Below are positions 6,992-61,363 of a stretch of DNA of 64,000 nt, one piece after another (positions within the stretch are counted from its first letter, which is position 1; each line of letters starts with the position of its first letter). The stretch covers positions 44,020,001-44,084,000 of the forward strand of contig NC_043005.1 of assembly GCF_006345805.1 (NCBI RefSeq). Reading direction: 5' to 3'. Position numbers and translations under genes: made by a program. The notes beneath the pieces were generated by a model, which saw only the letters and a list, made by a program, of their open reading frames with translations, was not told where the DNA came from and made no database searches. Source of the stretch: Octopus sinensis. Taxonomy: Eukaryota.

Positions 6992-7247
6992 TTTGAAACT
7001 ATTAATAGTTATCGCCAAGCCAATATGGCAGTCCATAAATATAGGACGAATGCTGCCGTTGATTAGCTCCAAGAGGCCATCGCCTCTAGCTAGCTAATCA
7101 CCTCTTGGAGCTAATCAACGGCAGCATTCGTCCTATATTTATGGACTGCCATATTGGCTTGGCGATAACTATTAATATCCAGTACCACTGCCGTAGTTTC
7201 CTTTAGAGAGACTTAGAAATAATAATATTTCTACGTTTGAAACTATT
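6992..7247 (+). mobile_element. Short fold-back element (PLE pLTR-like 3' fragment) with perfect 77-bp inverted arms
   Basis: 7000-7076 is the exact reverse complement of 7101-7177. Segment 7101-7243 resembles 49700-49820 and 49400-49475. TTTGAAACTATT occurs at 6992-7003 and 7236-7247. Confidence 0.75.
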
Positions 7248-8766
7248 TTCTGTTTAAACATGTCGAGTTTACTGAGGCAACAGAACTTAGTGAAATTACT
7301 AAATTCTATTTTTTGGTAGACGTTTACTGGAATAAGCATGAAATTCAAATTTGTAGTTAAAGGTTAAGCATTACAAATTCATAAACAAGAAATGCTGCGA
7401 GCAACAAGTATATGTTGTCAGAGCCAAGACTCATGTGCTAAAAGAAGAGAAAGCGAAAACTGAACTAGGATGGTGAAGGCATGACACAGAAACAAAGCAA
7501 CAATTTGATCTTTGACAAATCTGAAAAGACATTTGCTACTTGATTTCAAGCAGATGTGTCTGTTTTTGTGTCAGCCCTTCACTCAACTCTGAGTAGATTT
7601 CTTGTCCTTTTTCAATCTCAGATTATTTATAAATATATTGGTAGTTTATGTTAACAAACAAAGTTACTCATCTTATAATAATTATATTCCCAAACAAGAC
7701 GATGCTCCACTTTGCCTTGGCTGTGCTGGCTAAAACAAATGAAAGAATTTCTCATTCACATTTAACCTACAAATGTTCACCCTCTTTTCTAACAAGAATT
7801 CTAGTTTTCTGACAACAAATTCAATCTGCTAATTACTCATTGCTTTCAATTATTTCCTTTAACACTACTTTCAGGAGGAACTGGTTCAAGTATCATTTGA
7901 AGCTATAGGGTTTAAAGAATCTTCTATGCATTGATTTAATCTTAATAATTCTCATCACTTTACAAAAAACATTTTTCGAATTCAAAAGCAATAACCAAAT
8001 AAAACAACCTTTCTTTCTGCTTTTCTTTTAACCAATGTCTTAACAGCTACTTTAGATAGCTTTGGGCAGCCATTACTAGGTAGTACTAAACTTAAATAAT
8101 CTGCCGACAAATCAACTTTTATACATCTTTTAAAAACATGTACAATATTTTGTCTTTCTCGAGTGAATACTCTTCATTCTTCAAATTAGTAATTTACAAT
8201 TTTTTCCATTTTTCAACAATATTCCCTCAATCACGCACACATCTGCATCTCCCTCTTCTCTTACAAGGCCTTCACAATATAAAGCACTTAAAGATGTGCT
8301 TGGCATCTTCATTTGCATAAAAACATAAAACCTATACATATCCAGAAAACTGAATCATACCATATTCATAAGTTGCAGTTTGCCATGTGGAATTCTACAG
8401 GGAGGAATTGTTTGATCGTTTTAGTGTCTAGTGATTCTGTCTGAAACTACTCAGCAACCATGCTTCTCACAACCCAAACCCACTTCTACACAGAACACCA
8501 TCACATCTCCTTATCTCTACTTCTGTCTGCAACCACTAACATTACCACTGGAACAACAATACACTTCACAAGCCCAACAAACCAAGCCATCCCACCTTCA
8601 TCACTTGCATTTGTCCCACTCATCTCAAGACCACATTTACTCATACACACTCACACACACACACACATGCACATGCACACGCATTCATGCACTCATACTT
8701 GCATGCACACACACATACACATACATGCGCACACACACAATAGAAGAACACAAATGAAGTTCAAAG

Positions 8767-8853
8767 TTCACAACAGCTGTTTCAGCAGAATTTTATTGAT
8801 GCATTCTTAGATTACATCATGGCAAAACCCAAAACCCACCATCTTCAGGTAAA
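8767..8853 (-). ncRNA. Candidate type I hammerhead ribozyme, core intact
   Basis: Minus strand: UUUAC-CUGAAGA-U-GGUGG...CUGCU-GAAAC-AGCU-GUU^GUGAA. Stem I is 5 bp, stem II is 5 bp with 3 G-U pairs, loop III is palindromic. It lies about 30 nt from a CA-rich tract. Confidence 0.55.
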
Positions 8854-9318
8854 TTTTAAACATAAATAAAGCGGAAATAGAAGGTGACCAGTTCACTATC
8901 AACTATAGAGGAACAGACTATGAGTATATTTATGCATATAGATATGGGGAATTAATGCAGAACTTATAGCTCTTGTACATTGACTAACATTATTGGTGCA
9001 TGAGGTAATGTACCTACATATTTACATAAAAACCTAGAAAAGGCAAAAGAAACTGATGGGGTTTACTCCAAATCCAATCTATTAGTGGCACAGTGGAGAT
9101 TTGCAAGACTTTCTGAAGATTCTCAAACTGAGATTCTTTAGGTGAATAGATACACACACTTGGGTGTATGCATTGGCACTTCTCAACTCAACCACATATT
9201 TACAAATGCTGGGAATGCTCTTAACTCAAAAAAGCCTCAATGCTTTGTTATCAACTGACTTAAACTCTCTCAAGAAGAACCTAAATAAAACTCAAAGGAA
9301 AACATACATACACACACA

Positions 9319-9530
9319 CAAGGGGTACTGAAAAGTTCTTGGCTTTGGGTAAAAGAAAATACAGAAGGATCAGTTAATTATGATTTTATTCAACATATTT
9401 CCCTCTCAGATTCACACACATATTGCAGTGGTCCTTCAGTTTTTCTAAGCCCTGTAAAAGAGCTCAGAAGTTTGGGCCTCCAACTAGGCCTTTCATGATA
9501 CCCTTAAAGTCAGGAACTTTAGCATGTTGT
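9319..9530 (+). mobile_element. Mariner-like terminal fragment
   Basis: Starts aaggggtactgaaaagttc, resembling TACGAGGG-type mariner ends. No transposase ORF. Confidence 0.35.
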
Positions 9531-10149: not shown

Positions 10150-10203
10150 TCCCACTCCACAACATCATCACTATCATCAGCATCATCAGCATCATCATCA
10201 TCA

Positions 10204-10829: not shown

Positions 10830-11170
10830 GTATGCATATAAGTATATATATAAAAATTCATATATATATCAAAAGGATATGTTATAATACTATTCCACAG
10901 CCATACCAACAATCCAACATACCTCCATCATCAGCTGCCATATGGATATCATTATGGTTTCGACACCTGGGCAGTACCATTCAACCTAGCAGTGTCAACA
11001 GCACTAAAATAAGTGTTGTTTGGGAACAAATAAACAAACCAAAGAAACCACAACTTTCAAACACATTTACTCACTCTACAACCGTATATATACGCACTAA
11101 CATCAGTAAGTACATAAATGCAAAACAAGGTGGAAAAAATAGTATTTGAATACTGAAGGCATTGATCACA

Positions 11171-11210
11171 ACTGTCTAACGAACGGGAACATGAAACTCT
11201 GAGTAACAGT
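11171..11210 (+). ncRNA. Degenerate minimal type I hammerhead
   Basis: ACUGU-CUAACGA-ACG-GGAA-CAU-GAAAC-UCUGA-GUA^ACAGU. Stem I is a perfect 5 bp, the core has G5A, and stem II has one mismatch. Confidence 0.65.
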
Positions 11211-11265
11211 CTTTTTGTATGATTTTGTAACTTTAAAAAAAAAAAGTATCTATATATATATATAT

Positions 11266-11449
11266 ACCGGAGTAAACACATAAATGTGAAACAAGGTGGA
11301 AAAAAGAGTACTCAAATACCAGTGGTAGAGTAATATGCTTTATTTAAAGCAGCAGAAAATTCAACAAAACCTGTTACTCTGAGTTTCCTGCTGCAACGGG
11401 GAACTCAGAGTAACAGGTTTTGTTGAATTTTCTGCTGCTTTAAATAAAG
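11266..11449 (-). mobile_element. (TA)n-flanked fold-back element carrying an HHR 3' half
   Basis: 48-bp perfect arms 11338-11385 / 11402-11449 contain AAC-UCAGA-GUA-ACAG (full GAAAC on the minus strand). Nearly identical to 30444-30637. Confidence 0.8.
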
Positions 11450-11461
11450 TATATATATATA

Positions 11462-12716
11462 TCATCATCATCATCATCATCGTTTAGCGTCCGCTTTCCA
11501 TGCTAGCATGGGTTGGACGGGTCAACTGGGGTCTGTGAAGCTGGAAGGCTTCGTCAGGCCCAGTCAGATCTGGCAGTGTTTCTACGGCTGGATGCCCTTC
11601 CTAACGCCAACCACTCCGCGAGTGTAGTGGGTGTTTTTTACGTGCCACCTGCACAGGTGCCAGACAGACCTGGCGAACGGCCACGAACGGATGGTGCTTT
11701 TACGTGTCACCGGCACGGGGCCAGGCGATGCTGGCAACGGACACGAACGGATGGTGCTTTTACGTGCCACCGACACGGGGCCAGACAGAGCTGGCAACCG
11801 GCCACGAACGGACGGTGCTTTTACGTGTCACCGGCACGGGGGCCAGCCGAGGCTGGCAACGGACGCGAACGGATGGTGCTTTTACGTGCCACCAACACGG
11901 TTGCCAGACAGAGCTGGCAAATGGCCACGAACGGATGGTGCTTTTACGTGTCACCGGCACGGGGCCAGGCGATGCTGGCAACGGACACGAACGGATGGTG
12001 CTTTTACGTGCCACCGACACGGGGCCAGACAGAGCTGGCAACCGGCCACGAACGGACGGTGCTTTTACATGTCACCGGCACGGGGGCCAGCCGAGGCTGG
12101 CAACGGACGCGAACGGATGGTGCTTTTACGTGCCACCAACACGGTTGCCAGACAGAGCTGGCAAACGGCCACGAGTGGACGGTGCTTTTACGTGTCACCA
12201 GCACGGGGGCCAGCCGAGGCTGGCAACGAACACGGACGGATGGTGCTTTTACGTGCCACCGACACGGGGCCAGACAGAGCTGGCCAACGGCCACGGACGG
12301 ACGGTGCTTTTACGTGTCACCGGCACGGGGCCAGGCGAGGCTGGCAACGAACACGAACGGATGGTGCTTTTACGAGCCACCGACACGGGGCCAGGCAGAG
12401 CTGGCAAACGGCCATGAGCGAATGGTGCTTTTACGTATCACCGGCACGGGTGCCAGACGAGGCTGACAGCGGACACGAACAGATGGGTCACTTAACCCCT
12501 GCTTTCTGATATATGATTTGATTTTGATTGTTCTCACTGGTCTTGCCGGGTCTTCTCACGCACAGCATACTTCCATAGGTCTCGGTCTCTGGTCATTTCC
12601 TTGGTGAGACCTAGAGTTCGAAGGTTGTGCTTCACCACCTCGACCCAGGTTTTCCTGGGTCTACCTCTTCCACAGGTCCCCTCAACTGCCAGGGTGTGGC
12701 ACTTTTTCACACACTT

Positions 12717-12959: not shown

Positions 12960-13555
12960 CACACATCAGGTGTCTAAGAGTTTGTAAGTCAGGGAAAAGA
13001 CGCACTCATATATTTGTCAATAGAGTGGGTATATTACTCAAAGTGTACTGTATTATATATCCATCACGGCTGATCTTACTCATCAGCTTCGCACAAGGAA
13101 TACGATGGAGTGTTAGGTAACAATCTGATTATATAACCTTACGTTCATCAGAGTTAGCTGATATGGAAAGGAATATGGTGACTGTTCTTTGTTGTTGGAA
13201 GTGAATGGACACATCCATTTTGCAGTTACTATGAAAAAGATGGTGAAACGAAAATGAGCAGGGGATTAGGTTTGGAGTTATGCCTCTTGATTGGGTTCAC
13301 TGTAACACTGGTAAGAGTTATCTTGAAATGTTTGTGGGAAATGCATGTGTTATTAAGTATGGTGCTCCTTTGGGGGTGGAGTGTGTGATATGTGTAGTGG
13401 TATCATGTGTATAATTTTTTGCCAGGAGTGTAGGTATATATAATTGTGTTCATCAGTCTGTTTTCTTTCTGTATTGGTTAAGATCAGGGGGAGCTTTATG
13501 TTAGCGTGTAGGGGTACAATGTGTGTGGGAGGGGTTACATATGTAGGGGTATATA
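12960..13555 (-). mobile_element. (TA)n-flanked element with degenerate HHR (13069-13158)
   Basis: Minus strand: GCUAACU-CUGAUGA-ACGUAAGG...CCUUGUGC-GAAGC-UGAUGA-GUA^AGAUCAGC. TA repeats on both sides. Confidence 0.4.
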
Positions 13556-13560
13556 TATAT

Positions 13561-13960
13561 CATCATCATCATTATCGTTTAACGTCCATTTTCCATGCTG
13601 GCATGGGTTGGATGGTTCAACTAGGGTCTGGAAAGCCAGGAGGCTTCATTAAACTCCAGTCTGATTGGGCAATGTTTCTACAGCTTGATGCCCTTCCTAA
13701 TGCCAACCACTCCGAGAGTGTAGTGGGTGCTTTTTACGTGCCACCAGTATGGGAGCCAGTCAAGGCGGTGCTGTTATCGGCCACATTCAGATGTTACTTT
13801 TTACATGCTACTGGCACAGAAGCCAGTTGGGGTGAGGGGTCTGGCATTGAACATGTTCAGATGGTACTTTTTATGTGCCAGCGGCATGGGGACCCCAACT
13901 ACAATTTCCATTTGATTGTGATTTGATTTCATTTGATGTTGACGTACTTGATGTACTTGA
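13561..13960 (-). mobile_element. RTE 3' UTR/tail copy
   Basis: Same catcatc..gtttaacgtcc..ccatgctggcatgggttgg..gatgcccttcctaatgccaacc terminus as 11462-11630. Confidence 0.75.
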
Positions 13961-14586: not shown

Positions 14587-14660
14587 CATACATACATACA
14601 TACATACATACATACATACATACATACATACATACATACATACATACATACATACATACA

Positions 14661-15211
14661 AAGAAATAAGAACCCACAGTATAGTAGAAACCATAGTCAC
14701 TCATTATGAAAAGGAGTACTGGTGGAAAATCTCAGTGAAAACCTCAATAAAATGTAAACATAATAGATCTGACATAGTGATTTGTGATGGGAATAAAAAA
14801 CTGTATAGTTATGGAAATCAGCTGCCCAGTGGATGTTAACATAAAGCTAAAGATCAACACAAAAGAAAATACCTATGCTGAACTACTGAGAAATCTACAG
14901 TTTTTCTATGCAGATTAAAAGTTCAGGTATATATCTGTAATTATTGGGGCACTGGGATAAGTAACCTACTGCCTAAATAACAATCTTGAGAAATTAGGCT
15001 TCTCAAAACCAGAAAGGAGAAAGCTGATTTGAAGACTACAGATCCAAGTCATCACTATAACTGTAAAAATCTGTAAAGCTTTGCAAAAGTTTACCATTCA
15101 AATATATATGAACATGTCTAGACATGCAACAATATGCATGAGAATACATACATAAAACAAAACATATAAATTTGTATGTATACAAACATTGTTACATACA
15201 TACATCATACA

Positions 15212-15243
<32 letters not shown>

Positions 15244-15792
15244 CATACATACATACATACAAAGAAATAAGAACCCACAGTATAGTAGAAACCATAGTCA
15301 CTCATTATGAAAAGGAGTACTGGTGGAAAATCTCAGTGAAAACCTCAATAAAATGTAAACATAATAGATCTGACATAGTGATTTGTGATGGGAATAAAAA
15401 ACTGTATAGTTATGGAAATCAGCTGCCCAGTGGATGTTAACATAAAGCTAAAGATCAACACAAAAGAAAATACCTATGCTGAACTACTGAGAAATCTACA
15501 GTTTTTCTATGCAGATTAAAAGTTCAGGTATATATCTGTAATTATTGGGGCACTGGGATAAGTAACCTACTGCCTAAATAACAATCTTGAGAAATTAGGC
15601 TTCTCAAAACCAGAAAGGAGAAAGCTGATTTGAAGACTACAGATCCAAGTCATCACTATAACTGTAAAAATCTGTAAAGCTTTGCAAAAGTTTACCATTC
15701 AAATATATATGAACATGTCTAGACATGCAACAATATGCATGAGAATACATACATAAAACAAAACATATAAATTTGTATGTATACAAACATTG

Positions 15793-15823
<31 letters not shown>

Positions 15824-15963
15824 CATACATACATACATACATACATACATACATACAAAATACCCTGTTGATGTTGAATTTCCAATGAAGGAGTCTTGTA
15901 TCTAGGTTAGAAACTGGTTCTTTCTCTGTTGGCAAGAAATCTTGAAATAAAACTGAATAATGA
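14661..15963 (+). pseudogene. R4/Dong-like RLE non-LTR retrotransposon 3' end, with a 601-bp internal tandem duplication, embedded in (CATA)n
   Basis: Decayed translation KHNRSDIVICD..(frameshift)CIVMEISCPVDVNI...IIGALG fits the PD..E..P restriction-like endonuclease C-terminus. Segment 14661-15195 is repeated at +601. Confidence 0.8.
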
Positions 15964-22335: not shown

Positions 22336-22339
22336 ACGA

Positions 22340-22565
22340 GCTGGCAGAAGCGTTAGCACGTCGGGCGAAATGCTCAGCGGTATTTCGTCTGCGTTACGTT
22401 GTGAGTTCAAATTCCGCCGAGGTCGACTTTGCCTTTCATCCTTTCGGGGTCGATAAATTAAGTACCAGTTACGCACTGGGGTCGATGTAATCGACTTAAT
22501 ACCTATGTCTGTCCTTGTTTGTCCCCTCTGTGTTTAGCCCCTTGTGGGTAATAAAGAAATAGGAT
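22340..22565 (+). mobile_element. SINE family C, near full length
   Basis: gagctggcagaagcgttagcacg..gagttcaaattccgccgaggtcgactttgcctttcatcctttcggggtcgataaattaagtacc..aaagaaatagg. CpG-rich, so probably young. Confidence 0.85.
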
Positions 22566-26945: not shown

Positions 26946-26978
<33 letters not shown>

Positions 26979-27025
26979 TGTATGTATGTATGTATGTATG
27001 CATATATGTATGTATGTATGTATGC

Positions 27026-27083
<58 letters not shown>

Positions 27084-28989: not shown

Positions 28990-30443
<1,454 letters not shown>

Positions 30444-30445
<2 letters not shown>

Positions 30446-30637: not shown

Positions 30638-30675
<38 letters not shown>

Positions 30676-32585: not shown

Positions 32586-32600
32586 TATATATATATATAA

Positions 32601-40916: not shown

Positions 40917-41108
40917 TAAAGCAAATAAGTAATAAGGATGTTCAGGTGTCAGTGCATTACGGCCATTTCTAGAGGTTCCATTTAATTGATCAATGCAAAC
41001 ATTACATCAATTTGAAATAAACTACTCTTCTCAGTTACATACGACCTTGTAAATTTCCAACATACAGGATATTCCGTTATAATTTTAGCCAGTACTACAT
41101 ACTGAAAT

Positions 41109-41960
41109 ACATTGCTTCTTTTTGCTATTATTTTGCTATTATTGTAGGGAAAAAATACCTAAATCCTGCTATAATTTAGAGTGGCTGAATGAAATAATGG
41201 GATCAATAAAGGGGAATGGTGATATAGCTACTTTCGTTTCTATCCTTATCACATTCAACAGACCCAATGCAGCAAGTAGTCTACATCCCATTAAAATTAA
41301 AACCATTGGGAATTGACAATTAAGTTCTTGTTGGTGGTGATAAATTAATGTCAGATATTCTTCCTTACTCTTATTTCATTAAGACCATAAAATCAGTCAT
41401 ACCTATATAAAAGAATATGTCTCAGAAGATGCTAGTTAGATAATAATATAAGGATGAGGTGATAACCTGAAAGAGGAGGGACAGGGGTGACTTAACATAT
41501 TATGATTATCAACTAAAAGGGCCTAAAATGGGAAACAAAGATCATATTAGAAATACAGGGGAAACATATGTATCTAAAGTTAGCAAAGTTTATCTATTAA
41601 AATATTAAGATTTAGAAAAGTATTTAAGGATCCAGTAAGAGAAGAGGATAGATAAAACAATCTAAGCCGTAAGTGTGGGGTACTTATATATAGAAAGAAA
41701 CCTCATAATGCTTATTTCTAGCATAATGTTAACGTGGTAATGATAAAATTGTTCAACAATGAATCTATAATAAAATTCAGATATCATCCAAGTAGGGGTA
41801 TGCATTTTCTTCTGAATCGAAACCAAATATTAAGGGTTAAAAATAAGATAAATATTTTTATAACAGGTACACTTATTTAAAAACCTTTGAAAATATATAT
41901 ATTAAAAAATTACCAACATATTGAAAAAATCTGAATTGATATAAGATATAAAAATATCAT
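41109..41960. repeat. Block X, left arm of long inverted repeat (pairs with 48394-49270)
   Basis: Near-identical pseudo-ORFs at 41122-41316(+) and 49063-49257(-); many shared exact stretches. Confidence 0.9.
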
Positions 41961-42039
41961 ATATATATAGATATACATATATATACAATAAGCTACCAGG
42001 TGTAAACCATTCATTTTATTATCCATTAACCACAACCAA

Positions 42040-45000
42040 TTTCCAATTTCCAGGAGGAAGGTGCTATATGGTAGCATACCAAGATGATGGATAACATAAC
42101 ACTGGATGTTTTGTTAAAGGACATGCCTATACCCAGTAGGAAAGATTATATACATGATCTTTTGGAGGAAATGAATCAATTTGTACATAGAATGCAGTGG
42201 AAAGCTTTCTTTTTTGACAAGGAGCTTAAGCCTGAACATGGTGACCTACTAAGAAAAGTATTAAAATCTAGAAGGAACCCACCAACCAACAAATTTGAAG
42301 AAGAATTATATAGTATAGTCAAGGATGCAAAGTTCAGGAAGTACCTTAGAAGGTGTAATCAGAAAATTACTTGTCGACTTCAAGAATGCTCTGGGGATAC
42401 TTGTTCCAGCAGACAAAACAAGTAACATTTACATTGTTGATATTGAACTATATAAGTCTGTGATTAGGAAAGAATTACGCAGCAAATATAGACATGCTAG
42501 TCATGACGTATTAAGAAAAATTAACCATACAGATATACAAATCGTCCGAGATCTAGCCATAGATGATAGAGCCAAACCCTACATCCCCAGAAAACCCCGG
42601 ATTTTGCTTAAGGGCCATAAAACTAATTTTCTTATTGACCCCTCAGTTAGATTGATTTGTCCTTCTAAATCCGATATAGGCATTATTAGTAAAAAAATCA
42701 TTGATAGGGTAATACCTGTCCTTAAGTCTAAAATTAGATCAGCCCTTGGATGGTTTAAGCTTCTAGAAATTAGTAAGAATAGTAAATTCTTGCAACTAGA
42801 CATAGAGAGCTACTGTGCCACTATCAACCCGATTGTTCTTAATCAAGTCCTGATTTTTAGCATGAAATATTCTGATTTGTCCTGATGTGAAATAGATATT
42901 ATACTTACTGTGCAAGCCACTCTAGTAGATTTTGATGGTAGATTATGGAGTAGATTAGATAGGGAGAATGCATTTGATATAGCAATGGGCTCACATGATT
43001 CTGCTCAGGCCAGTGACCTAGTAGGAATATATATCCTTTCATTAATCTAGTCTTCCTTTCCAAAAGTAACAGGGGTTCTATATAGGGATGACGCTTTATT
43101 TTTTCTAGACAGAAGTAGTAAAATATTGTTAGAAAGGTACAGAAAAAATATCTTAGGCTTTTCAAAAAATTTTGACAAAACACTATTATAGGTAAAGATT
43201 ATCGTAGAGTGAATTTTCTTGATGCTACCTTCTGTCTTGATTCTAGATTATTTGAACTATTTCATAAGCCAAATGATCATATTAAGTACATTAACGTAGC
43301 ATCCAACCATCCACCCTTGATTATACAGGGACTAGGTAAGAATGTTTCTACAAGAATCTCTAGATTATCTGCTAACAATGAAATTTTCAAACCTCATGCA
43401 TCTTATTATAATGCTGCTCTAGCTAGCGCTGGGTACCATGAAAAAATCCAGTATATGTAAGAAGCAGGCATACACAACACTGGTAATTCCTCCAGTTGTG
43501 ATGCACATTGTATACCACCACAACGTTACCATTTGAGAATTCCCTCAGATAAAGAATAGAGGCCAGAAAGAATTGGTCATATCAATGAACTACCAACGAA
43601 AACTCATAGACACACATGACATAATAATTCAACTGCTTGTTCCAATCCTGTGCAACACACTCGATCAAATATACCTAACAACAGATATAGGAATCAGGAT
43701 GTCATCTGGTTCAACCGATTTTTGGTTTGCATGTTTCAAGATCGCTGGAAAATTTTTTGCTGCTTTGGACAGGTGTTTTCCTAAATCTAATCGGTATCAT
43801 GTTATTTTTAATCGACACACCATGAAGGTATCCTATGCCAACTCTGCTAATTTAGAGCAGCTTATGCATCACATAAACAATAGCAAAATGTGGCAAAGGT
43901 TCAGTAACCCATGTAGTGGATCTAGCGAGTGTTTGCATCTAAATACCAAACAAGGAGATGTAAACCACATTGATAAACACCAGCTACGACCAATTTGTAG
44001 TAGTAGAAATACTTATGATACAGCTAGCATGGTAACAATGCCGGTATGTGGAGTTGGAACTGCCATATATACAAATAAATATGATAAATGCTCATGCAGA
44101 GAAAAATCAAAATGTCCTTTGATGAATCTCTGTATGAGTACAAATCTTGTATATAAATGTACTGTGCACACAAGAGGAGGTCCCTATGTTTACATTGGGC
44201 AGACGGCTGGTTTATTTAAGAATCATTATCGTAACCATGTTGCCAACTTTAAAACAATCAATAAGAGACATTCAATATCTTTGGCAGATTTTGTATGGTG
44301 ACTGAAGGAGGATAAAATAGAGTACAGCATTAATTGGTCCATAGTAAGGTATGTGAAACCAGGCAATATAATTTCCAGAAGATACTGTCTCTGCTCCAAG
44401 GAATCCCTATCTATTCTGTGGACTAACGAAAAGATAATAGAATTTCTGAATGACTATCGAAATGCCTACATGCATATAAATGTACTTTCCCACAATGCAG
44501 TGAGAATGAATTTTGAGCAAACATTAACTACTTTAAGGTATGGATGACTTAAGTTTACTTTTAACCTCCCCATTCTAATAAACACTAAGTTGATAAATAA
44601 CTTGCTTTGTGATCATGAGTGCATCAAACCTCACATGTGCATATGCTCACATTTTTGCAAATGCTCGTATGAGTGAGTGTGCTTGCACCATGCAGCTTGT
44701 CTGAGGGCATTTATACATCCATACCTGTTAATTGTTATTTTTTATACTTTCCTCGCTGGATTGTGTGTTCATTTCTCTTTTTGTCATCTGTGATTTTATT
44801 TTTGATCTTCTATATAAATGAAGATATTTCCTCTGTCTGGCTGCTTTTCTCTCTACACAACAGAAAGTTACATTGCGGAACAGTCATTTTAATGAGTTTT
44901 AATTATTTATCACCCGACGAGATACATCTGCACCACTGGATGCTCCTGAATCAGTTGTTGAGTGTCCCACCCAAGAGGAATCAATGCTAGATGTACCAAA

Positions 45001-45057
45001 ACAATTGTTGTGATTAATAATAAATTCTCGTATATTCCATCTTCTGTCTTTCATTGG
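42040..45057 (+). pseudogene. Penelope-like retroelement P1 (RT + C-terminal GIY-YIG + 3' pLTR), disrupted ORF
   Basis: ADKTSNIY; LDIESY; MGSHDSAQASDLVG; YRDD at 43081-43092; NFLDATF; YINVASNHP; CSC-x5-C-x5-C followed by LVYKCTV..YIGQTAG. Several stops and frameshifts. Ends in (TA)n. Confidence 0.92.
44909..45014 (+). ncRNA. Degenerate type I hammerhead in the P1 3' pLTR
   Basis: AUCAC-CCGACGA-GAUACAUCU...AGAUGUACC-AAAAC-AAUU-GUU^GUGAU. Stems I and II are preserved, loop III is palindromic, core has U4C and G12A. Confidence 0.75.
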
Positions 45058-45174
45058 CTATATATATATATATATATATATATAAGGGTAATCCAAACGA
45101 GAAAACAGAAAAAACAACAACACAAGGAGGTGGAACAATTAAAGTATTATTATTAGGCGCTCAGGAAAAAGGGA

Positions 45175-45219
<45 letters not shown>

Positions 45220-45235
45220 ATATATATAATATATA

Positions 45236-46320
45236 TATGAAGTATATAGTGTAATTATAAAATATAGATATATATAAATAAATATAAATACCATATTGTA
45301 TTACATTATATCATTATTACTATAGAGAGAAGTTACAAGCTCCTTCACAATCTATAGAAATTACACCAGTATATATGAAGGTATATAGATATACAAAATA
45401 CAATAATGTAATAAGATATAAAAGAATAAATAAAATAATGTAAAGTAGAATAAATGGAGAAAATATTTGTATAAAATTTTCAATAAGGGATTTATTTGTA
45501 AAATGGAAAAAAGGAAGAAAGAAACAAAGATAAAAATTTTACATTTCAAATGCCATAAAATATGTACAAGATATAAAAAGAGAGATAAAAGATCAAAAAT
45601 AAGGATAAGTCAAGGTATTCATAACAAAAGCTAATTAAAAAAACAATTGAAAAATAAACTAAATAAGATAAAGATACCATTGGAAATGGTTTTATAAGAT
45701 ATTTGTAGAATCATAACAGTTCTTAGCAGGTATTTATTATATTTAAGGAAGGTGTAGGATCTGGTAATCCATTGTAAATATACTTATCATGACTGATAAG
45801 GAAGAAAGTCTTAGCACCAAAGGAGAAGTAACGTAATCTAGATATTGGAGGAATGCAGATTAAACAGGTAGGGGTTATAAGAGGGCAATATTACATAAAA
45901 TTCCATTCAATAGAGGGTATGATATTAAAGATATGACACACCAAATAACTTATGTCACCAAATTATAGTATGATATGTATAATATTATTTGTTTCTAAAA
46001 TATTTGAAGGTATGGGTGATTCTATTCACACAAGATATCCCAAAGTCTAATATATTATTTATTAGGTTATTCTTATCTCTATACTTAAAATTTTTTTAAA
46101 TTTCTGTACAACATAGTTTGCATCCATATTAGCTATCTTTGTATGGCTGAGCTCCTCGTACTATGTCCCATTTAAGGCTAAATTTACTATTGTTTTCTTT
46201 AAGTTCCTAGATTTTACTAGATAATGATGTACCATTAGCTTTATGCCTAAGTCTAAAAGATGAAAGATGGTTATTAAGGCACTTCTTCATATTAATCGAG
46301 TGCCCAGTGTAAATAAAGTT
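45236..46320 (-). pseudogene. PLE P2, 5'-truncated copy: GIY-YIG C-terminus plus 3' region (block Y)
   Basis: Minus strand from 46320: FIYTGHS..KKCLNNHLSSF..ANGTSLSSKI*ELK...LKWDIV..AQPY..GCKLCCTE. Confidence 0.8.
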
Positions 46321-46429
46321 ACTAGTTTCTGTCATCACTGTATATTTGTAAACAACATTTTTGGCTAAACAGTGACCTAATAATGGGCACTGAGATTCTA
46401 GCCTGTAATTGCAGCTGGGAATATTATTG

Positions 46430-46550
<121 letters not shown>

Positions 46551-46800
46551 ATTCATAGTACCACTCAAGTCCATTGTAGTATTATCATGTGTTTTGCCAC
46601 TAATACCTGAATTATGTTTGGCAGTATCAGTGTTTATATTAGTTCTATTGTTCAGGGTTTCTTCATTTCCACTATTATTATGCAGACAATACAGGACAGA
46701 CTTGGTGCCTCAACTTAAGCATCTAATTCAACCGAATCTTAATTATTTTTCAACTTGTCAACTGTACTTATACAACATTAACAGGGTGGAAAGGGTAAAT

Positions 46801-48338
46801 ATGGAATTTTCTCTAAAGGATATCCCCATTCATAGTAAGGATAAATTCATGTGGCTATTAACCCATAGGATTAATGAATTTGTTAGGAGGATGAGGTGGA
46901 TGGTTTACCATCATGAAGCTAAGATGAAGAAAAAAGACCTGGAAACATACAATAAAAATTATTATAAGATTTCAAAAGCAGAAAAAATCCTCCCCCTAGC
47001 TCACTACTGGAAAACTTTGTAAAAGATTTATTCGAACTAATATCTAATATAAAATTCAAGGAACACCCACTTAGGAGAATCTTATACCTGAGGAACTTAA
47101 AGACTTACTTAAATTGCTACAGAATAAACTGGGAATACTTGTGCCAACAGACAAAACAGTGAACTTATATAGATTACACTATGAAACCTATAAAAGACAA
47201 TATTAAAAGAGCTTAATGCCAAATATAGAGTAACCACAGAAAAGAATCTCTTTGATATTAACTTGGAAATTAAAGAAATTATGATGGACTGTGACTTGGT
47301 AGATAGAATGGAATCCAGGAAGCCAAATGAACCCAGAATTAAGCTCAAAGACCACAAAAGGAATTTTCATGATAATCCCTTTATTAGACTTTTTTGCCCG
47401 ATTAAATGAAATATTGGTCAACTTAGTAAATCCATTCTTGATACGATATTACCCCTAATAATTCCTAGTTTATCTCTTAAATTATGGTGTGATACTGATG
47501 AAGTAATAATATTATACATATACTATAATTTGGTGACATAATCTGGTAGGTCATATCTTTCATATCATACCCTCTATTGCATGGAATTTTATGTAATTAT
47601 TGTCTTCTTATAAACCCTACCTGCTTAATTTGCATTCCTCCTATACTTAGATTACATACCCTCTATTGTATGGAATTTTATGTAATATTGCCCTCTTATA
47701 ACCCCTACCTGTTTAATCTGCATTCCTCTATTATTTAGATTACAGTACTTCTTCGGTTCTAAGACTTTCTTCCCTATCAGCTATGATCCTACACCTTCCT
47801 TAAATATTATAAATACCTGCTAAGAACTGTTATGATTCTACATACATATGTGCCTGTAATAATATATCTTACAAATATCTTATAAAACCATTTCCAATGG
47901 TATCTTTATTATATTTTGTTTATTTTTCAATTATTTTTTAATTAGCTTTTGTTATGAATACCTTGACTTAACCTTTTTTTTTTTTTATCTTTTATCTCTT
48001 TTTTTTCATATTCAGTACATATTTTATGGCATTCGAAATGTAAAATTTTATCTTTGTTTCTTTCTTCCTTTTTTTTCCTTTTATAAATCCCTTATTGAAA
48101 TTTTATACAAATATTTTTCCCTTTTATTCTGCTTTCCATTATTAAATTTATTCTTTTATTTCATATTATATCATTGTATTTTGTATATCTATATACCTTC
48201 ATATATACTGTTGTAATTTCTATAGATTGTGAAGGAGCTTGTAACTTCTCTCTATAGTAATCATGATATAATATAATACAATATGGTATTTATATATATT
48301 TATTTATATCTAAATTTTATAATTATGCTATATACTTC

Positions 48339-48345
<7 letters not shown>
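46801..48345 (+). pseudogene. PLE P2, internally deleted copy: ORF N-terminus joined at ~47504 to block Y
   Basis: MEFSLKDIPIHSKDKF..FVRRMRW; PRIKLKDHK..NPFIRL..SKSILD. An exact 42-bp match links 48212-48253 to the reverse complement of 45324-45365. ~88-bp internal tandem duplication at 47567-47743. Confidence 0.8.
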
Positions 48346-48393
<48 letters not shown>

Positions 48394-48398
<5 letters not shown>

Positions 48399-49270
48399 TA
48401 TTTTTATTCCTTATATCAACTCAGATTTTTTCAAAATGTTAGTAATTTTTTAATATATATATTTTACCAAGGTATTTAAATAAGTTTACCTGTTATAGAA
48501 ATATTCATCTTATTTTTTAGCCCTTAATCTTTGGTTGTGATTCAATAGAAAATGTATAACTCTACTCGGTTGATATCTGAATTTTATTATAGATTCATTG
48601 TTGAATAATTTTATCATTACCACGTTAACATTATGCTAGAAATAAGCATTATGAGGTTTCTTTCTATATAGAAGTACCCCACACTTATGGCTTAGATTGT
48701 TTTATCTATCCCTCTTCTCTTACTGGATCCTTAAATACTTTTCTAAATCTTAATATTTTAATAGATAAACTTTGCTATCTTTAGATACACATTTTTTCCC
48801 CTGTATTCCTAATTCACATGCTTAGATCTCAATATGATCTTTGCTTCCCATTTTAGGCCCTTTTAGTTGATAATCATAATATGTTAAGCCACCCCTGTCC
48901 CACCTTTTTCAGGTTATCACCGCATCTTTATATCATTATCTAACTAGCATCTTCTGAGACATATTCTTTTATACAGGTATGACTGATTTTGTGATCATAA
49001 TGAAATAAGAGTAAGGAAGAATATCTGACATTAATTTATCACCACCAACAAGAACTTAATTGTCAATTCCCAATGGTTTTAATTCTATGGAGATGTAGAC
49101 TACTTGCTGCATTGGGTCTGTTGAATGTGATAAGGATAGAAACGAAAGTAGCTATATCACCATTCCTCTTTATTGACCCCATTATTTCATTCAGCCACTC
49201 TAAATTATAGCAGGATTTAGGTATCTTTTCCCTACAATAATAGCAAAATAATAGCAAAAAGAAGCAATGT
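48394..49270. repeat. Block X, right arm (inverted)
   Basis: Reverse complement of 41109-41960; separated from block Y only by (TA)n. Confidence 0.9.
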
Positions 49271-49346: not shown

Positions 49347-49820
49347 AGTAGTCAAACCCAGCAGGTGTCACTGTTGACTGTCTGTTAGCTTGGCGATGAC
49401 TTTTGATACCCAGTGCTGCTGCTGTAGTCTCATTTAGAGAGATTTAGAAATAATAATATTTCTATTTTTGAAACCCAGTGGATGTTTCCACTGAATATAT
49501 ATAAATCTTTGATCATAGAGCCAACAGCAACACCTGCTGGGTTCGACTACTTCTGATAAAGGGCAATTTGCACATTGATAAAGAGCAAATACTCTGAAAC
49601 TAATCTGTGGATGTCCGAACCAGCATGGGGAAGCTGATAACCTCCCCTGTTCGAAGGTTGTAATGGATACAGGTTTGTGTATCACATAGCTAGCTAGAGG
49701 TAATGGCCTCTTAGAGTTAATTAATGGCAGCATTCATCCTATTTTTCTGGACTACCATGTTAGCTTGACAATAACTATTAATACTCAGTACTGCTGCTGT
49801 AGTCTCCTTTAGAGAGATTT
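49347..49820 (+). mobile_element. Rearranged element of the 7000-7243 family with an HHR-like motif at 49553-49610
   Basis: CUGAUAA-AGGG-CA-AUUUGC..GCAAAU-A-CUCU-GAAAC. 49347-49377 is inverted relative to 49521-49551; the 3' end segment is present twice. Confidence 0.55.
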
Positions 49821-50264
49821 AAATATATATATATATGACCTGCTTTTTTCAGCTTCCATATACTTGCATAAGATGCCAGGCAGAGTAACTGACCCTAAAA
49901 CCATGTGGTTGGGGTGGAAATTTCTAACCACACCACCATATATGTTTACAGCTATGTCTCTGTGTTTGTGTCTCTCTGCACAACTACTTAACAAATGGTG
50001 TCAGTTTGTTTATGTCCTTATAACTTAGCAGTTCAGCAAAGAGATCCAATAAAATAAGTAACAGGCTTTAAGACATAAGTGCTGAGTGTGGGTGAAATTT
50101 GTTCAAATAAACCCATCAAAGTGGTACTCCAGCATGGCCACCGTCCAATAACTGAAACATGTAAAAAATTAAAGATAATGCAAAAGTATATCTGACCTTG
50201 ACAATAAATATCTTTTGAAAGACTTTTGGGTGTTTGCTATGGGAAATAAATTGGAACTCCATCG

Positions 50265-52259: not shown

Positions 52260-52904
52260 TTAAAGTATTTTACTTACATAACTTTGAAAGCCCATCTGGA
52301 AAACATCCAGACAAACATTTGATTCATCTGCATAAACAAGACAAAACGTAAAATTGGCCTTTACCATAAACAAATCTGTGATGACTTTAGCAGGACACAA
52401 ACAGCATACTGTAATAAGACTGGTTCAAGAACATTATAAAAAAAAGTTATGTAAATTCATGAAGTCTGATATTCTTGACGATTTCTATGTTTGTTTTTGA
52501 AAATGTGAGGAATTTAGAAATACTCACCACAATCAGCAAAATACATATGAAATTATAAGTAATCCTCCAAAAAAAAAAAAACTCTTCAGTCTCAAGGTAA
52601 ATTGACTTTGGTAATGAAACCTGATGACAAACCAATAAATGTTAACATGGATAGTTCTGATGGAGCTGAGATTTGTGAATATTATGTTTATGCAGCATGA
52701 TTGAATGGTTAATAGGGTAATAGGTTAGCTTCATTATCATGAGATCTCAGGTGGCACCTGGTCTTTTGCTCTGGGTCAACTTAAGCATTGTGAGTGAAAT
52801 TAGGTAGATCAAAACTGTTCAGAAACCCACTGAATGGATTGTACCTGTAATCTGAAAGCCTGGTCACATCACACTGTAGTATACTGATTCTGCCAAGATT
52901 TATG

Positions 52905-57911: not shown

Positions 57912-58143
57912 GGTGGCAAGCTGGCAGAAACGTTAGCACGCCAGGCGAATTGCTTAATGGTATTTCAACTACTGCTACGTTCTGAGTTCAAATTCCACCT
58001 AGGTTGACTTTGCGTTTCATCCTTTCAGAGTCGACTAAATAAGTACCAGTTACGCACTGGGGTCGATATAACCGACTTAATCCATTTGTCTGTCCTTGTT
58101 TGCCCCCTCTGTGTTTAGCCCCTTGTGGGCAGTAAAGAAATAA
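57912..58143 (+). mobile_element. SINE family C
   Basis: Matches 22340-22565. Confidence 0.85.
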
Positions 58144-58446
58144 GAAGCTTGCTTCTCAACCACATGGTTTTGGGTTCAGTATCACTGCATGGCACCTTGG
58201 ACAAGTGTCTTCTACTATACTTCTGGGCTGACCAAAGCCTTGTGAGTGGATTTGGCCACAGTCAAATAACTGAAACAAGCAAGAGGTGAATTTATTTTCA
58301 GTTGGGTTTTCTCCCTTCATGTCAATGTCCACTATGCATTTCATATTTTACGCAATTAGTAAAATAAGAACCTGCTAGAGTACTCCAGGCAATGTCAAAA
58401 ACCATAACCTTCAAAGACAGTGCTTCAGGTTTGTCTCATTTCAGCA

Positions 58447-58875
58447 GCAGACAAAATACCTATTTCTTTATTACCCACAAGGGGCTAAACACAGAGAGGA
58501 CAAACAAGGACAGACAAACGGATTAAGTCGATTATATTGACCCCAGTGCGTAATTGGTACTTAATTTATCGACTCCGAAAGGATGAAAGGCAAAGTTGAC
58601 CATGGCAGAATTTGAACTCAGAGCGTAGCAGCAGACAAAATACCTATTTCTTTACTACCCACAAGGGGCTAAACACAAGAGGACAAACAAGGACAGACAA
58701 ACGGATTAAGTCGATTATATTGACCCCAGTGCATAACTGGTACTTAATTTATCGACTCCGAAAGGATGAAAGGCAAAGTTGACTTCGTCGGAATTCGAAC
58801 TCAGAACGTAGCGGTAGACAAAATACCGCTAGGCATTTCACCCAGTGTGCTAACGTTTCTGCCAGTTCACTGCCT
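58447..58875 (-). mobile_element. SINE family C, one head plus tandem ~184-bp body units
   Basis: agacaaaatacc recurs at ~58449, 58633 and 58816. Confidence 0.85.
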
Positions 58876-59974
58876 TAATGACACAAAATAATGACACAAG
58901 AATGTCACTACTAACATAAGAAAAATTAAAACAGACAAAAATAATTTCCTATATTGAGTTAAAGTTTTAAAAATAGAGAAAAATCTAATAATGGATTTAG
59001 TGTAACTGAGTACAACTTGTAATTGTTAATTAATTATGCTAAAGGCTGAAACCAAATATTGTTATATAGTAGCATTGCTGTGAAATCGTGCTTGTGGCAT
59101 CCGATCTCCTGATCAAACCAAGAAAATTATATTTCTATTCTCTCTTATGTTTCTTTTTTTTTGTGTGTGTGTTTCTTTTACCATGGCACAGGCAAGGCTG
59201 CTGATTAAAATGCTCACTTTGCAACCACATGGCTTCAGGTTCAGTCCCACTGAGTGGCACCTACAAAAGCCCTAAAAACCTACAATAGCCCTAAAAAAAA
59301 TGAGTGAATTTGGTATATAAAAATCGAGTGCAAGTGCTGTCATATATATTCTTATTCTTTTATTCTTTTATTATTTTACTTGTTTCAATCATTTAACTGC
59401 AGCCACGCTGGACCACTGCCTTTAAGGGTTTTTTTTAGTCAAAGAAATCTACCCCAGGACTTATTCTTTGTATGCTTAGTAGTTATTTTATTGGTCTCTT
59501 TTTACAAGGATGTAAACACACAAACACAAAGACACACATACATAAATACACACACACACACACACATAGAAGTTGAAAATGCACTAAGAATAGTGAAAAC
59601 GTCTTTTATTAAAAGGTTTGAAGCTTTAACCGGTTTTACAGTTAACACTGATTTTCAAAAAGTTCAAATAGAAAGATGTGGCTTATGTCACAGCCGTCTT
59701 GGTTCTGACTAGTGTTTGAAGTTTGCCCAGTTTTTATAGGGAGTTCATGGCTCAAATTAGTATATTGTTTTGAATAGGATTTGATTGGTGGAGGATAGTC
59801 ACATGACTGGTCTTAGAAATTTTTGTAGGTTCCTTGCTATGTCCGTGTGTTAGTATCAAGTGATAATGTTTGTCGACTGAACAAATCCAAACTATCAATG
59901 CTTTGAATGTTTTCTGTCAAATGTTTGTAGAGAATGAACACATGATTAAGTTTGTGTTCATTCTCTACAAACAC

Positions 59975-60585
59975 TTTTCGAAACGTTTACATCATTCTTA
60001 ACACAATCAAGGAGATCTTGTGCAACTGACACCCAAGTGTCTTTTTGGTCAACTGAAAGCAATTTTGGCACAAACTTGGCAGACATGCAGCTCATACCAA
60101 ATCTTCAGTGATAATGGACTGAACTGAACCGTAACTAATCTGCACATCCTCTCATAACTCACAGATAGTGATTCGAGGATTTCCCTTCACAGCTGCACAC
60201 ATATCTGCAATGTTTTTCTCAGTTCTGCTGATTGCAGGTCTCCCAGAACTTTTGTCACTATTGACATTATTTTGTCCATCTTGGAAACGTCTGAACCATT
60301 TGTACGTTTGTGTGCGGCTCATACACACCTATCCATACACTTTCTGCAACTTAATGTTGCCTTCTGAGCAGATATCACCATGACAACTTTCTCTGTCATG
60401 GTCAATGCAATGATGACATGCTACACACCTTCCTTCCAAGCACTGTAGTAAACAGCGGAAGTGAGATAGAATGTTAAAACTTAGTGCACATACACAGCAG
60501 GTCAATCTATGCCAAGCAGCTTCACATGCAATTTAGCTTCGTTAGTATGGCAATAGTCCAGATACTTATTGATCAGACCTCGTGT
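59975..60585 (-). pseudogene. Mariner 5' half (TIR + HTH region of transposase)
   Basis: End reads ..CGAGGTCTGATCAATAAGTATCTGG. Translation QTYKWFRRFQDG..SGRP..NPRITICEL..SAKFVPKLL (WVPxxL-type motif). Confidence 0.85.
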
Positions 60586-60731
60586 ATATATATATATATA
60601 TACACATATACACGTATAGTTTATTGTCGTCAGTTGATATATATATATATATATATATATATCAATATATATATATATATGTATATATATACATATATAT
60701 ATATATATATTATATATATATATATATATAT

Positions 60732-61363
60732 CATTGGTAAAGCATAAATCTGAAAAAGAAGCACATTCTATGTTATAGAGCAGTACCCTGTGTTATATAA
60801 ATAAAGTTAGATAAGTGAGATTATGGAATTACCCTGGGTTTCACGTCCATAAATTGCTTAGCATTACAGCATATCATCAGATCCCAAACCTGTTGGCTTA
60901 TGGTCTCTCTAGAAAATGGAGGAGCAGGGTTGACAGTACTGATAGTCGAAGCTACAGAGACACGAACAGAACCAATGGTGGCACCATTACCAGCAATAAT
61001 TTACCATGGCGAAGTCTTCATCAACAGAGACGCCAAGATTAAATATATAAACACGAGGTCAATCCAGCAAGTGCCTCTTGCTTATGTATTTTAATTTTTT
61101 TCAAATCCACCACGCAAGCACAGTCTATTTTGTTGGCAGCAAAAAAGAAAAAAAAAATGCCAGCAATTTCTTCGAACGAATCTACCAGAAATCATTATAC
61201 ATAATTAATAATATCAGGGTAATAAAGATTTTAGAAATTTTTACTACAAGTGGCCTAGAAAAATTAGTCAATAGACTATATAGTCTATTGACTTTTTCTA
61301 TGCGCTAGGCTACTGGTAGTAAAAATTTTTTAAATCTTTATTACCCTGATATTAGTAATTATA
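60732..61363 (-). mobile_element. (TA)n-flanked HHR element with 5' fold-back (61201-61362)
   Basis: HHR at 60824-60886. Imperfect ~80-bp arms around a perfect 28-bp palindrome at 61266-61293. Confidence 0.7.
60824..60886 (-). ncRNA. Type I hammerhead ribozyme, core intact
   Basis: UGGGAU-CUGAUGA-U-AUG...CGU-GAAAC-CCAGG-GUA^AUUCCA. Stem I is 6 bp; quasi-palindromic ACCC-A-GGGU stem III. Confidence 0.75.

Follow-up and report, generated by a model that had tools for sequence, protein, structure and literature searches.

Short non-coding elements bearing hammerhead ribozyme (HHR) motifs and a Penelope-like element (PLE) occur together in a 64-kb stretch of the Octopus sinensis genome (contig NC_043005.1 of assembly GCF_006345805.1, positions 44,020,001 to 44,084,000 of the forward strand), here called the window, by which we mean all 64,000 nucleotides analyzed, numbered from the first letter. 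Three element families, termed C, D and E, have intact type I HHR cores, a fourth, termed B, has a decayed or truncated motif, and the other proposed sites are unsupported, so that “at least six unrelated families” read by an earlier note on this DNA come down to three with intact cores. The families are probably products of PLE-type target-primed reverse transcription (TPRT) at microsatellites, partly as 5′-truncated 3′ ends and partly, in the case of B, as short non-autonomous units, with the HHRs as passengers of the dimer type. The HHR-bearing elements are as follows.

8739-9302 (-): family E, about 565 bp, non-coding, (TG)n-type microsatellite on both sides; HHR 8853-8767, core 8848-8772.
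11106-11246 (+): B1, linear; 5′ part, mutated HHR (11153-11207) and 3′ tail, followed by (TA)n.
11267-11454 (+): B2, fold-back flanked on either side by (TA)n; 5′ part, then the 3′ end in inverted and in direct orientation; palindrome 11333-11454.
30444-30642 (+): B3, fold-back with ends and junctions as in B2, at an unrelated locus; palindrome 30510-30642; 93% identical to B2.
36251-36585 (-): family C, inverted copy; HHR 36484-36425; 3′ end facing a (TA)3 remnant and a unit termed U.
36797-37131 (+): family C, direct copy, 335 bp, non-coding; HHR 36898-36957; 3′ end adjoining (TA)n at 37127.
60733-61195 (-): family D, at least 463 bp, non-coding, its 5′ limit putative and uncertain; HHR 60886-60824, core 60880-60830; 3′ end at (TA)n.

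HHR descriptors were written for the window and run on both strands, with simulated sequence as the null. The palindromic-HHR descriptor asks for exact cores, a stem II of at least 3 bp (one unpaired base after A9 being allowed), a stem I of at least 3 bp and a palindromic helix III, and it returned four matches from three independent families where 0.05 were expected (40 first-order Markov simulations of the window). A looser descriptor without the stem II requirement found the same four against 0.12 expected, and 0/200 simulations reached three; a strict type I descriptor retained only 36903-36952 (+) and 36479-36430 (-), given as C3-to-H17 coordinates, with 0.06 expected. The one-mismatch class stood at chance level in the window, with 21 motifs observed against 12 +/- 4.5 expected. 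The cores C3-U4-G5-A6-N7-G8-A9, G12-A13-A14, A15.1-U16.1 and H17 are complete in both copies of C and in D and E, and incomplete at 11153 (A9 to G), 13069 (no GAAA), 44909 and 49553 (G8 to A). The cores that the earlier note had called intact, at 8767 (-), 36425 (-), 36898 (+) and 60824 (-), were confirmed as complete type I motifs at exactly those places, by the descriptors and by direct reading.

All of C, D and E can form three helices with helix I open, and helix I measures 5-6 bp. The motif of C, which is the same in both copies, reads CUACG-CUGAUGA-AGCUA(21-nt hairpin loop)UAGCU-GAAA-C-UGCA-G-UA/CGUAG, that of D reads (U)GGGAU-CUGAUGA-U-[AUG.C..//..G.CGU]-GAAA-CCC-A-GGG-UA/AUUCC(A), and that of E reads UUUAC-CUGAAGA-U-[58 nt]-GAAA-C-AGCU-G-UU/GUGAA. 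Helix II consists of 5 bp plus an inner hairpin in C, of 3+6 bp with a bulge in D and of 6 bp, four of them G.U, in E; an extra unpaired U lies between A9 and stem II in D and E and is missing in C. The minimum-energy fold of stem II in D leaves the first U after A9 unpaired, and in E a stem II closed by GGUGGG/UCUGCU is only 0.8 kcal/mol less stable than the minimum-energy fold. Helix III, the segment between A15.1 and U16.1, is in all three families a palindrome or quasi-palindrome of 8-9 nt that is incapable of a stable hairpin (ACUGCAGU, ACAGCUGU in E, and ACCCAGGGU; that of D can be written ACCC-A-GGGU). With RNAcofold, two C motifs pair as a double hammerhead, in which helix I and an 8-bp helix III form between the molecules; the energy is -40.5 kcal/mol, as against 2 x -16.7 kcal/mol. 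Cleavage on the sense strand is predicted after A36952 (direct copy of C), the nucleotide at 36430 (inverted copy of C), A60830 (D) and U8772 (E), which would place the site internally, 28-174 nt upstream of the element 3′ end. The motifs of C, D and E look like minimal type I HHRs of the dimer type, of the kind borne by PLEs.

Such minimal HHRs have been described from PLEs: helix I is open and measures 4-6 bp, helix II is long, one nucleotide between A9 and 10.1 stays unpaired, helix III is short and palindromic, and 10.1-11.1 is a G-C pair; they occur mostly as dispersed single copies of extreme diversity within one genome, and “dual min-HHRs” lie ~100-700 bp apart on opposite strands (Cervera and de la Pena, 2014; PMC4209133). 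The opposite-strand pair of C resembles these dual motifs, and D and E share the unpaired nucleotide after A9. Our motifs differ from the published ones in the 10.1-11.1 pair, in the unusually long stem II region of E (58 nt) and in their context, as C, D and E have no pseudo-long terminal repeat (pLTR) arrangement of pLTR, open reading frame (ORF) and pLTR in the window.

The two arms of C (36251-36585 against 37131-36797) are 99.7% identical, and since only 1/335 positions differs, the insertion is recent, with its motif intact. D and E are each represented by one old copy whose core is intact; the sense strand of D is without ORFs, and no other copy of D is present in the window. Exact-protein look-ups of the ORFs overlapping C and D retrieved no further copies of either, a homology search found no homologue of the C ORF, and exact-pattern scans of metagenome and viral contigs found no C motif.

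Family B differs in having several copies and no intact ribozyme. Its kinship was established by alignment and nhmmer (B1, E = 2e-5), which also show common 5′ and 3′ termini in B1, B2 and B3. A single (TA)n tract contains B1 and B2, which have the same orientation and are separated by 20 bp; they are ~75% alike and belong to different subfamilies. B3 lies 19 kb away at an unrelated locus. The core of B1 (CUGAAGG ... GAAACUCUGAGUAA) has A9 changed to G and no helix I, so the degenerate HHR placed by the earlier note at 11171 (+) stands as an HHR-like motif with a mutated core at 11153-11207 and falls short of a ribozyme with all three helices. B2 and B3 carry an inverted copy of the last ~60 nt between the 5′ part and the 3′ end, and they have only the 3′ half of the HHR because these arms are 5′-truncated inside stem II; this half lies at 11400 in B2 and, as GAAACUCAGAGUAA, at 30588 in B3, and corresponds to the “3′ halves” noted before at 11402 and 30577. 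Since three copies share both ends at separate insertion sites, B can be regarded as a short non-coding unit amplified in its own right. At 140-200 bp it appears to be truly short and non-autonomous, and its ribozyme has already suffered mutation or truncation. The identical fold-back junctions of B2 and B3 at unrelated loci further suggest that the fold-back unit itself is the amplified template, which is a mildly new point.

The carriers share an architecture and a target. Five inverted duplications were found in the window (7000-7177, 11333-11454, 30510-30642, 36251-36585 against 37131-36797, and 61196-61367), the pairs other than C being 85-98% identical, and in B and C the inverted copy includes the 3′ end of the element. 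The five inverted copies of the earlier note are therefore real, but their attribution to HHR carriers fails for the fold-backs A (7000-7177) and H (61196-61367), both of which lack an HHR and the second of which is probably separate from D. The carriers are non-coding as stated there, with a measured size of 0.14-0.56 kb in place of ~0.2-1 kb (B 141-199 bp, C 335 bp, D at least 463 bp, E ~565 bp), and their ends adjoin (TA)n or (TG)n, in keeping with the (TA)n and CA-rich tracts it named. Runs of (TA)≥5 make up 2.2% of the window and 4.6% of all positions lie within 12 bp of one; both ends of B2 and B3, as well as ends of C, H, A and the copy at 32.6 kb, each defined by a homology breakpoint, fall on (TA) runs. 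Families B, C, D and E share no sequence with one another (nhmmer, window), and a profile scan in all six frames detected no PLE coding remnant beside any HHR carrier. No tandem array in the window contains an HHR (the arrays reported by TRF have periods of 61/122, 183, 129 and 88 or are microsatellites), and the intact HHRs occur singly or head-to-head in copies with fixed, non-permuted linear ends.

The PLE-related sequences of the window lie between 39 and 53 kb.

39195-39371 (-): PLE profile match, reverse transcriptase (RT) positions 248-305, independent E-value (iE) 6e-7.
41987-45059 (+): full-length dead PLE of the Hydra clade, 3.07 kb; RT (YRDD), CxCX5C linker and GIY-YIG; inserted in (TA)n; no recognisable HHR.
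45991-46467 (-): 5′-truncated PLE fragment, endonuclease C-terminus, profile positions 545-704; head-to-head with the next.
46789-47511 (+): PLE fragment, N-terminal third, profile positions 2-235; of a different family from the full copy (30-40% identity).
48330-48400 (-): empty-site paralogue, with uninterrupted (TA)n between the same flanks as those of the PLE.
52272-52679 (+): two weak PLE profile matches, iE 0.0075 and 0.12.

[quoted passage not shown] Its single ORF is broken by frameshifts and stops into at least three frame disruptions (three-frame reading of 41.9-44.7 kb) and is followed by a 3′ untranslated region (UTR) of ~500 bp. Along the ORF we read ADKTSN, RMQWK, LKGHK...RLICPSKS, FLQLDIESY, MGSHDSAQ, LYRDD and FLDATF...KPN...SNHP, then CSCREKSKC...VYKC...YIGQT in the endonuclease region, where alignment with homologues shows R changed to H and C to Y at conserved positions. 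A full HMMER search retrieved 926 homologues of the first PLE ORF, many of them 720-900 aa long, and a profile of 24 homologues matches 42087-44439 (iE 6e-74, 1e-34 and 7e-41); among the homologues there is no variation at D132 and K133, and the consensus of the second motif is RxRW. The AlphaFold model of the homologue P0016 (pLDDT 89.6) matches TERT (3du5, E = 1.8e-9) best among PDB structures, with the RTs of DRT, retrons and group II next. The isolated C-terminal domains of homologues are recognised as Pfam GIY-YIG (E = 5.5e-5, 23.8 bits against a cut-off of 22.6; 5/18 members), and in the PDB profile search the top match is I-TevI (E = 0.045).

The motif set consists of DKT, RxRW(K), CxCX5C, the absence of cysteines between GIY and YIG (no CCHH), and CxxC/CxH around E and N, and since it fits the published definition we assign the element to the Hydra clade. 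PLEs of this clade are short (<3 kb) and reside in (TA)n, with DKT in place of the DKG motif, an RWK motif close to the N-terminus, CxCX5C, no CCHH and canonical HHRs, and have been reported in molluscs (Craig et al., 2021; PMC8557442). The octopus copy is alike in its length of ~3 kb (3.07 kb), its single ORF, DKT, the RWK-type motif, CxxC/CxH around E and N and its insertion into (TA)n, and it differs in being dead and without a recognisable HHR.

Pfam RVT_1 and the other Pfam/NCBIfam models found nothing in the pieces of the PLE ORF or in ten full-length homologues, and a word-index search with the RT ORF gave no match. The RT-endonuclease family of the window PLE likewise goes unrecognised by Pfam/NCBIfam in full-length proteins (P0004, P0008, P0016, P0065 and others; loci L003-L008), and because no model recognises these proteins, routine annotation would leave such PLEs unclassified.

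Insertion of the PLE into (TA)n can be seen directly, because a paralogue of the site keeps an uninterrupted (TA)n. A large inverted duplication (86-92% identity) has brought 41091-41985 and 45179-45989 back at 49287-47505. Here the (TA)n is unbroken, and at the first locus the 3.07-kb PLE and a 92-bp insert interrupt it. The 92-bp insert (45086-45177) lies in the (TA)n directly 3′ of the PLE, is absent from the empty site and has no other copy in the window, and could be either a “tail” extension of the PLE or a separate tiny insertion. The centre of the inverted duplication (45991-47511) contains the two head-to-head PLE fragments, each followed by AATAATATTATACATAT... in its own 5′ to 3′ sense, and weaker similarity runs past the outer ends of the duplication (41091-45989 / 49287-47505).

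PLEs outside the window display the traits seen in the short families. L001 and L002 are outside copies of the window PLE (Logan run SRR11869391), and in L002 an inverted 3′ copy abuts a 5′-truncated direct copy. Relatives of the PLE from elsewhere have clean minimal HHRs in the non-coding parts at their ends: L004 has an HHR at 2341-2381 that reads UUCCG-CUGAAGA-U-CCCUUCGGGG-U-GAAA-C-CAUG-G-UA/CGGAA, L006 has one at 1235-1272 with helix III ACGU, and a second HHR of L006 (3827-3881) is identical to that of L007 at 262-316 (ACAGAACUGU), lying once downstream and once upstream of the ORF. As these relatives show, the HHR style, the target and the head-to-head architecture of families B to E match PLEs of this and other clades. 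PLE insertions in general are known to have an inverted 5′-truncated copy beside the 5′ end and fixed 3′ ends in microsatellites (PMC8557442).

These observations can be joined as follows. A PLE GIY-YIG endonuclease would nick a (TA)n microsatellite, or (TG)n in the case of E, and a TERT-like RT would copy the element RNA from its fixed 3′ end by TPRT; early stopping of this copying would cause the 5′ truncation, and a second, inverted and 5′-truncated copy would often be added at the 5′ side, giving rise to the fold-backs. The HHRs would be the minimal type I ribozymes that PLEs bear in their 3′ or pLTR region. Because helix III is too short alone but self-complementary, cleavage would require an encounter of two copies, such as a tandem or multimeric transcript provides. 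The copies here are single or head-to-head and not tandem, so the ribozymes are most probably relics or passengers. What is observed comprises the motifs with their statistics, the architecture, insertion into microsatellites and the identity of the PLE. From these we infer the endonuclease targeting, TPRT, the cleavage of dimers and the reliance of the short elements on PLE proteins.

A number of points weigh against this explanation. B, C, D and E have no sequence in common with the PLE 3′ UTR or with any autonomous PLE of the window (nhmmer, profile scan), so that their link to PLE proteins is one of architecture and HHR style. The Hydra clade is said to carry HHRs, yet the sense strand of the PLE at 41987-45059 holds no exact or one-mismatch HHR. 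The 10.1-11.1 pair is A-U in C and D and G.U in E and never the usual G-C. Each HHR family has 1-3 copies in the window and both C motifs are identical, which leaves no covariation signal; transcription and cleavage of C, D and E are predictions, and the 5′ limits of D and E are provisional. Another origin of the fold-backs that lack an HHR, considered below, would also count here. Finally, the Rfam hammerhead models, among the checks proposed by the earlier note, matched nothing in the window, C included: no Rfam family reached its gathering score over 64 kb, and no Rfam hammerhead model gave E <= 10 in the 1.1 kb around C (36.1-37.2 kb) or in the 4.8 kb at 8.5-13.3 kb. We take this null as insensitivity of the models and not as a refutation; minimal HHRs were first found by structure descriptors, not by models of the Rfam type (PMC4209133).

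The earlier note had also made the PLEs at 42-47 kb the drivers of the short elements. Profile and motifs do place a GIY-YIG PLE at 42-45 kb, with fragments at 46-47.5 kb, but the frameshifts, stops, changed endonuclease residues, missing HHR and lack of sequence shared with B, C, D and E do not agree with that role. The Hydra-clade PLE is a dead copy of one autonomous family and not a demonstrated source of the others.

Among the alternatives, it is possible, if somewhat doubtful, that every HHR piece is simply the 5′-truncated 3′ end (pLTR fragment) of an autonomous PLE elsewhere, with no independent non-coding population at all, an idea that for C, D and E overlaps with the PLE-type explanation preferred here. 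PLE insertions are typically heavily 5′-truncated (PMC8557442), the ~500-bp 3′ UTR of the window PLE is compatible with non-coding pieces of 330-560 bp, and the window offers no further independent copy of C, D or E that would fix a common 5′ end. Random truncation, however, would not be expected to start three B copies at the same nucleotide after (TA)n or to give B2 and B3 the same junctions; E, moreover, is bounded by (TG)n on both sides at ~565 bp, and none of the carriers has a PLE coding remnant beside it.

The PLE-type explanation could also be carried further, as a tentative and rather unlikely proposal, to a varied population of very short (0.14-0.6 kb) non-coding elements that target microsatellites and make use of the PLE machinery, of which the B2/B3 type would spread as ready-made fold-backs, a non-tandem counterpart of retrozymes resembling short interspersed nuclear elements (SINEs). 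If true, the inverted 3′ end would be part of the template and not remade at each insertion, and the hammerhead would be dispensable and would decay once the unit is independent of multimeric transcripts. The octopus families can also be compared with the Sm-alpha repeats of Schistosoma, which are SINE-like, dispersed, short and non-coding elements with a type I hammerhead, in a genome with PLEs, and which stand apart by a canonical, active hammerhead and a very high copy number.

The palindromes without an HHR call for a separate assessment, and their features are the following.

7000-7243 (+): family A fold-back, with arms 7000-7088 and 7089-7177 and a tail; no convincing HHR.
49348-49474 and 49687-49836: relatives of family A, the latter a single non-palindromic arm ending at (TA)n.
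61196-61367 (no strand assigned): fold-back H, without an HHR; two arms of 86 bp that share 85% identity; (TA)n at the outer left end.

TA is the target of miniature inverted-repeat transposable elements (MITEs) of the Tc1/mariner type, and A (7000-7177), H (61196-61367) and perhaps the B arms might be hairpin MITEs or foldback DNA transposons that target TA. This we regard as unlikely. The near-complete palindromes of 120-180 bp do lie in or beside TA tracts, and A and H contain neither an HHR nor PLE sequence. But the right arm of B is contiguous with the non-palindromic 5′ part in B1, which makes its palindrome a duplication, in inverted form, of the element 3′ end and not an element with terminal inverted repeats; single arms of family A that form no palindrome and end at (TA)n are found as well (49687-49836), and the same head-to-head form is found in a bona fide PLE, L002. 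H is probably a separate head-to-head pair of 5′-truncated copies, or a MITE. That it is the inverted 5′ end of D was rejected, because both arms are unlike D and the outer one stops at (TA)n in the manner of a 3′ end of its own.

The earlier note had called the population “retrozyme-like”. Metazoan non-LTR retrozymes are tandem 150-450-bp monomers with a type I HHR that give rise to circular RNA (Cervera and de la Pena, 2020; PMC7229834), and it has been argued that animal retrozymes derive from PLE pLTRs (Li, Clavereau and Pollet, 2026 preprint; 10.64898/2026.07.22.740005). The octopus families resemble them in being short, AT-rich and non-coding, in their type I HHR, in the proposed dependence on PLEs and in that some need dimers, and they differ in the lack of a tandem HHR array, the fixed linear termini and the internal cleavage site. 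We find it quite improbable that they are retrozymes in the strict sense, with tandem HHR monomers that are transcribed, self-cleaved, circularised by tRNA ligase and reverse-transcribed from circular RNA. The size of 0.14-0.56 kb and low GC fit the published elements (PMC7229834), type I HHRs that need dimers and the tie between retrozymes and PLE pLTRs drawn in the 2026 preprint point the same way, and B1 and B2 are in direct orientation only 20 bp of (TA)n apart. On the other side, TRF counted zero tandem HHR monomers in the window, a count that the earlier note had suggested, and the intact motifs are single or head-to-head; B1 and B2 are ~75% alike and of different subfamilies, the ends are fixed and non-permuted, and the predicted cleavage site is internal and not at the boundaries.

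That the intact motifs are chance matches in AT-rich, repeat-rich DNA is hardly credible, being refuted for C and very unlikely for D and E: the silence of Rfam and the chance rate of one-mismatch motifs would agree with it, but exact-core motifs with three helices number four against 0.05 expected, all lie near element 3′ ends by microsatellites, all have a palindromic helix III, and their style recurs in PLEs outside the window. Chance is the default for the sites at 13069 (-), 44909 (+) and 49553 (+), which have no statistical or comparative support and fail even the one-mismatch descriptor. The degenerate HHRs reported there are indistinguishable from chance (descriptor, simulations), and the palindromic stem III that the earlier note ascribed to most motifs holds for C, D and E (8-9 nt). 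At 44909, a decayed HHR was considered and rejected, as the cores are not conserved in the two outside copies of the PLE; aligned through this region, L001 and L002 read CCCGACGAG, CCUGGUGCA and CCCGACGAG, with no GAAA. The motif at 49553 lies between the two copies of family A and, besides G8 to A, has no helix III.

Much of what is seen here has been published already, namely minimal HHRs in PLEs, their mass dispersed or opposite-strand occurrence, the microsatellite bias, inverted truncated copies and the Hydra clade (PMC4209133, PMC8557442). No new mechanism is revealed, and the families are probably PLE-type 3′ relics and short non-autonomous derivatives. PLEs have been annotated in Octopus vulgaris with ribozymes unmentioned there (PMC13282606), and a full-text literature search for “hammerhead ribozyme” with “octopus” returned nothing specific. 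The window is of use as a case for teaching and annotation in which the known PLE syndrome, with dimer-type minimal hammerheads, microsatellite targeting, head-to-head truncated copies and a Hydra-clade autonomous copy, is packed into 64 kb. It suggests that PLEs may have given rise to part of the large “unclassified SINE/unknown repeat” fraction that has been reported for cephalopod-like genomes. Both halves of the system would escape standard pipelines, Rfam HHR models being silent and Pfam being blind to the RT and, in full-length proteins, to the endonuclease of this PLE clade.

Three further sets of features lie close to the elements described.

32840-32601 (-) and 33093-33332 (+): pair F2, head-to-head, 87% identical; overlooked in the earlier note.
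36172-36257 (+): unit U, 86 bp; adjoined on one side by (TA)n and on the other by the inverted copy of C with its outer (3′) end.
36672-36757: second copy of unit U, identical over the covered 85 bp.

Both arms of F2 begin 8 nt before a CUGAUGA followed by a 6-bp stem II, and the (-) copy ends at (TA)n. GAAACAGCUGUA is present in the (+) copy only, 91 nt downstream of CUGAUGA and 50 nt after stem II; the arms show 7/12 differences exactly in this GAAACAGCUGUA patch (33195-33210 against 32738-32723), with flanks ~90% identical. In stem II, one strand changes from CCAU to CUGU, and both changes retain pairing via G.U. The second copy of U is followed by a 42-nt inverted copy of the C 3′ end only and then by the direct copy of C. 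U is weakly similar to the H arms, with a marginal p of ~0.015 by shuffling.

At the junction of flank and fold-back A, an HHR-like string occurs at 6958-7010 (+), CUGCAGA...GAAA-CUAUUAAUAG-UU, with A6 changed to C, and its 12-nt “helix III” palindrome arises from the junction itself. The A unit has TTTGAAAC(TATT) at either end (6992 and 7237), which may be a target duplication or a tail.

Other repeats of the window include a GC-rich 61/122-bp tandem array of 14 units at 11636-12486, with relatives at 32015-32413 (-) and 13550-13745; this repeat family begins with (CAT)n directly after (TA)n, at 11455 and at 32600. A 183-bp unit is present in 2.1 tandem copies with dispersed or inverted relatives of 86-93% identity (58443-58827, 57919-58142 and 22339-22563), and has a SINE-like look and no hammerhead motif. 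Rfam microRNA models (mir-297, mir-3149, mir-466, mir-1277 and others) gave hundreds of sub-threshold matches with E down to 1e-10, which fall on TA/TG/ATGT microsatellites (e.g., 29516-29586, 26962-27030 and 5817-5885) and are low-complexity artefacts. Lastly, an overlapping direct duplication of ~670 bp, 99% identical, was seen at 14589-15257 and 15193-15857, flanked by ATAC/ATGT microsatellites.

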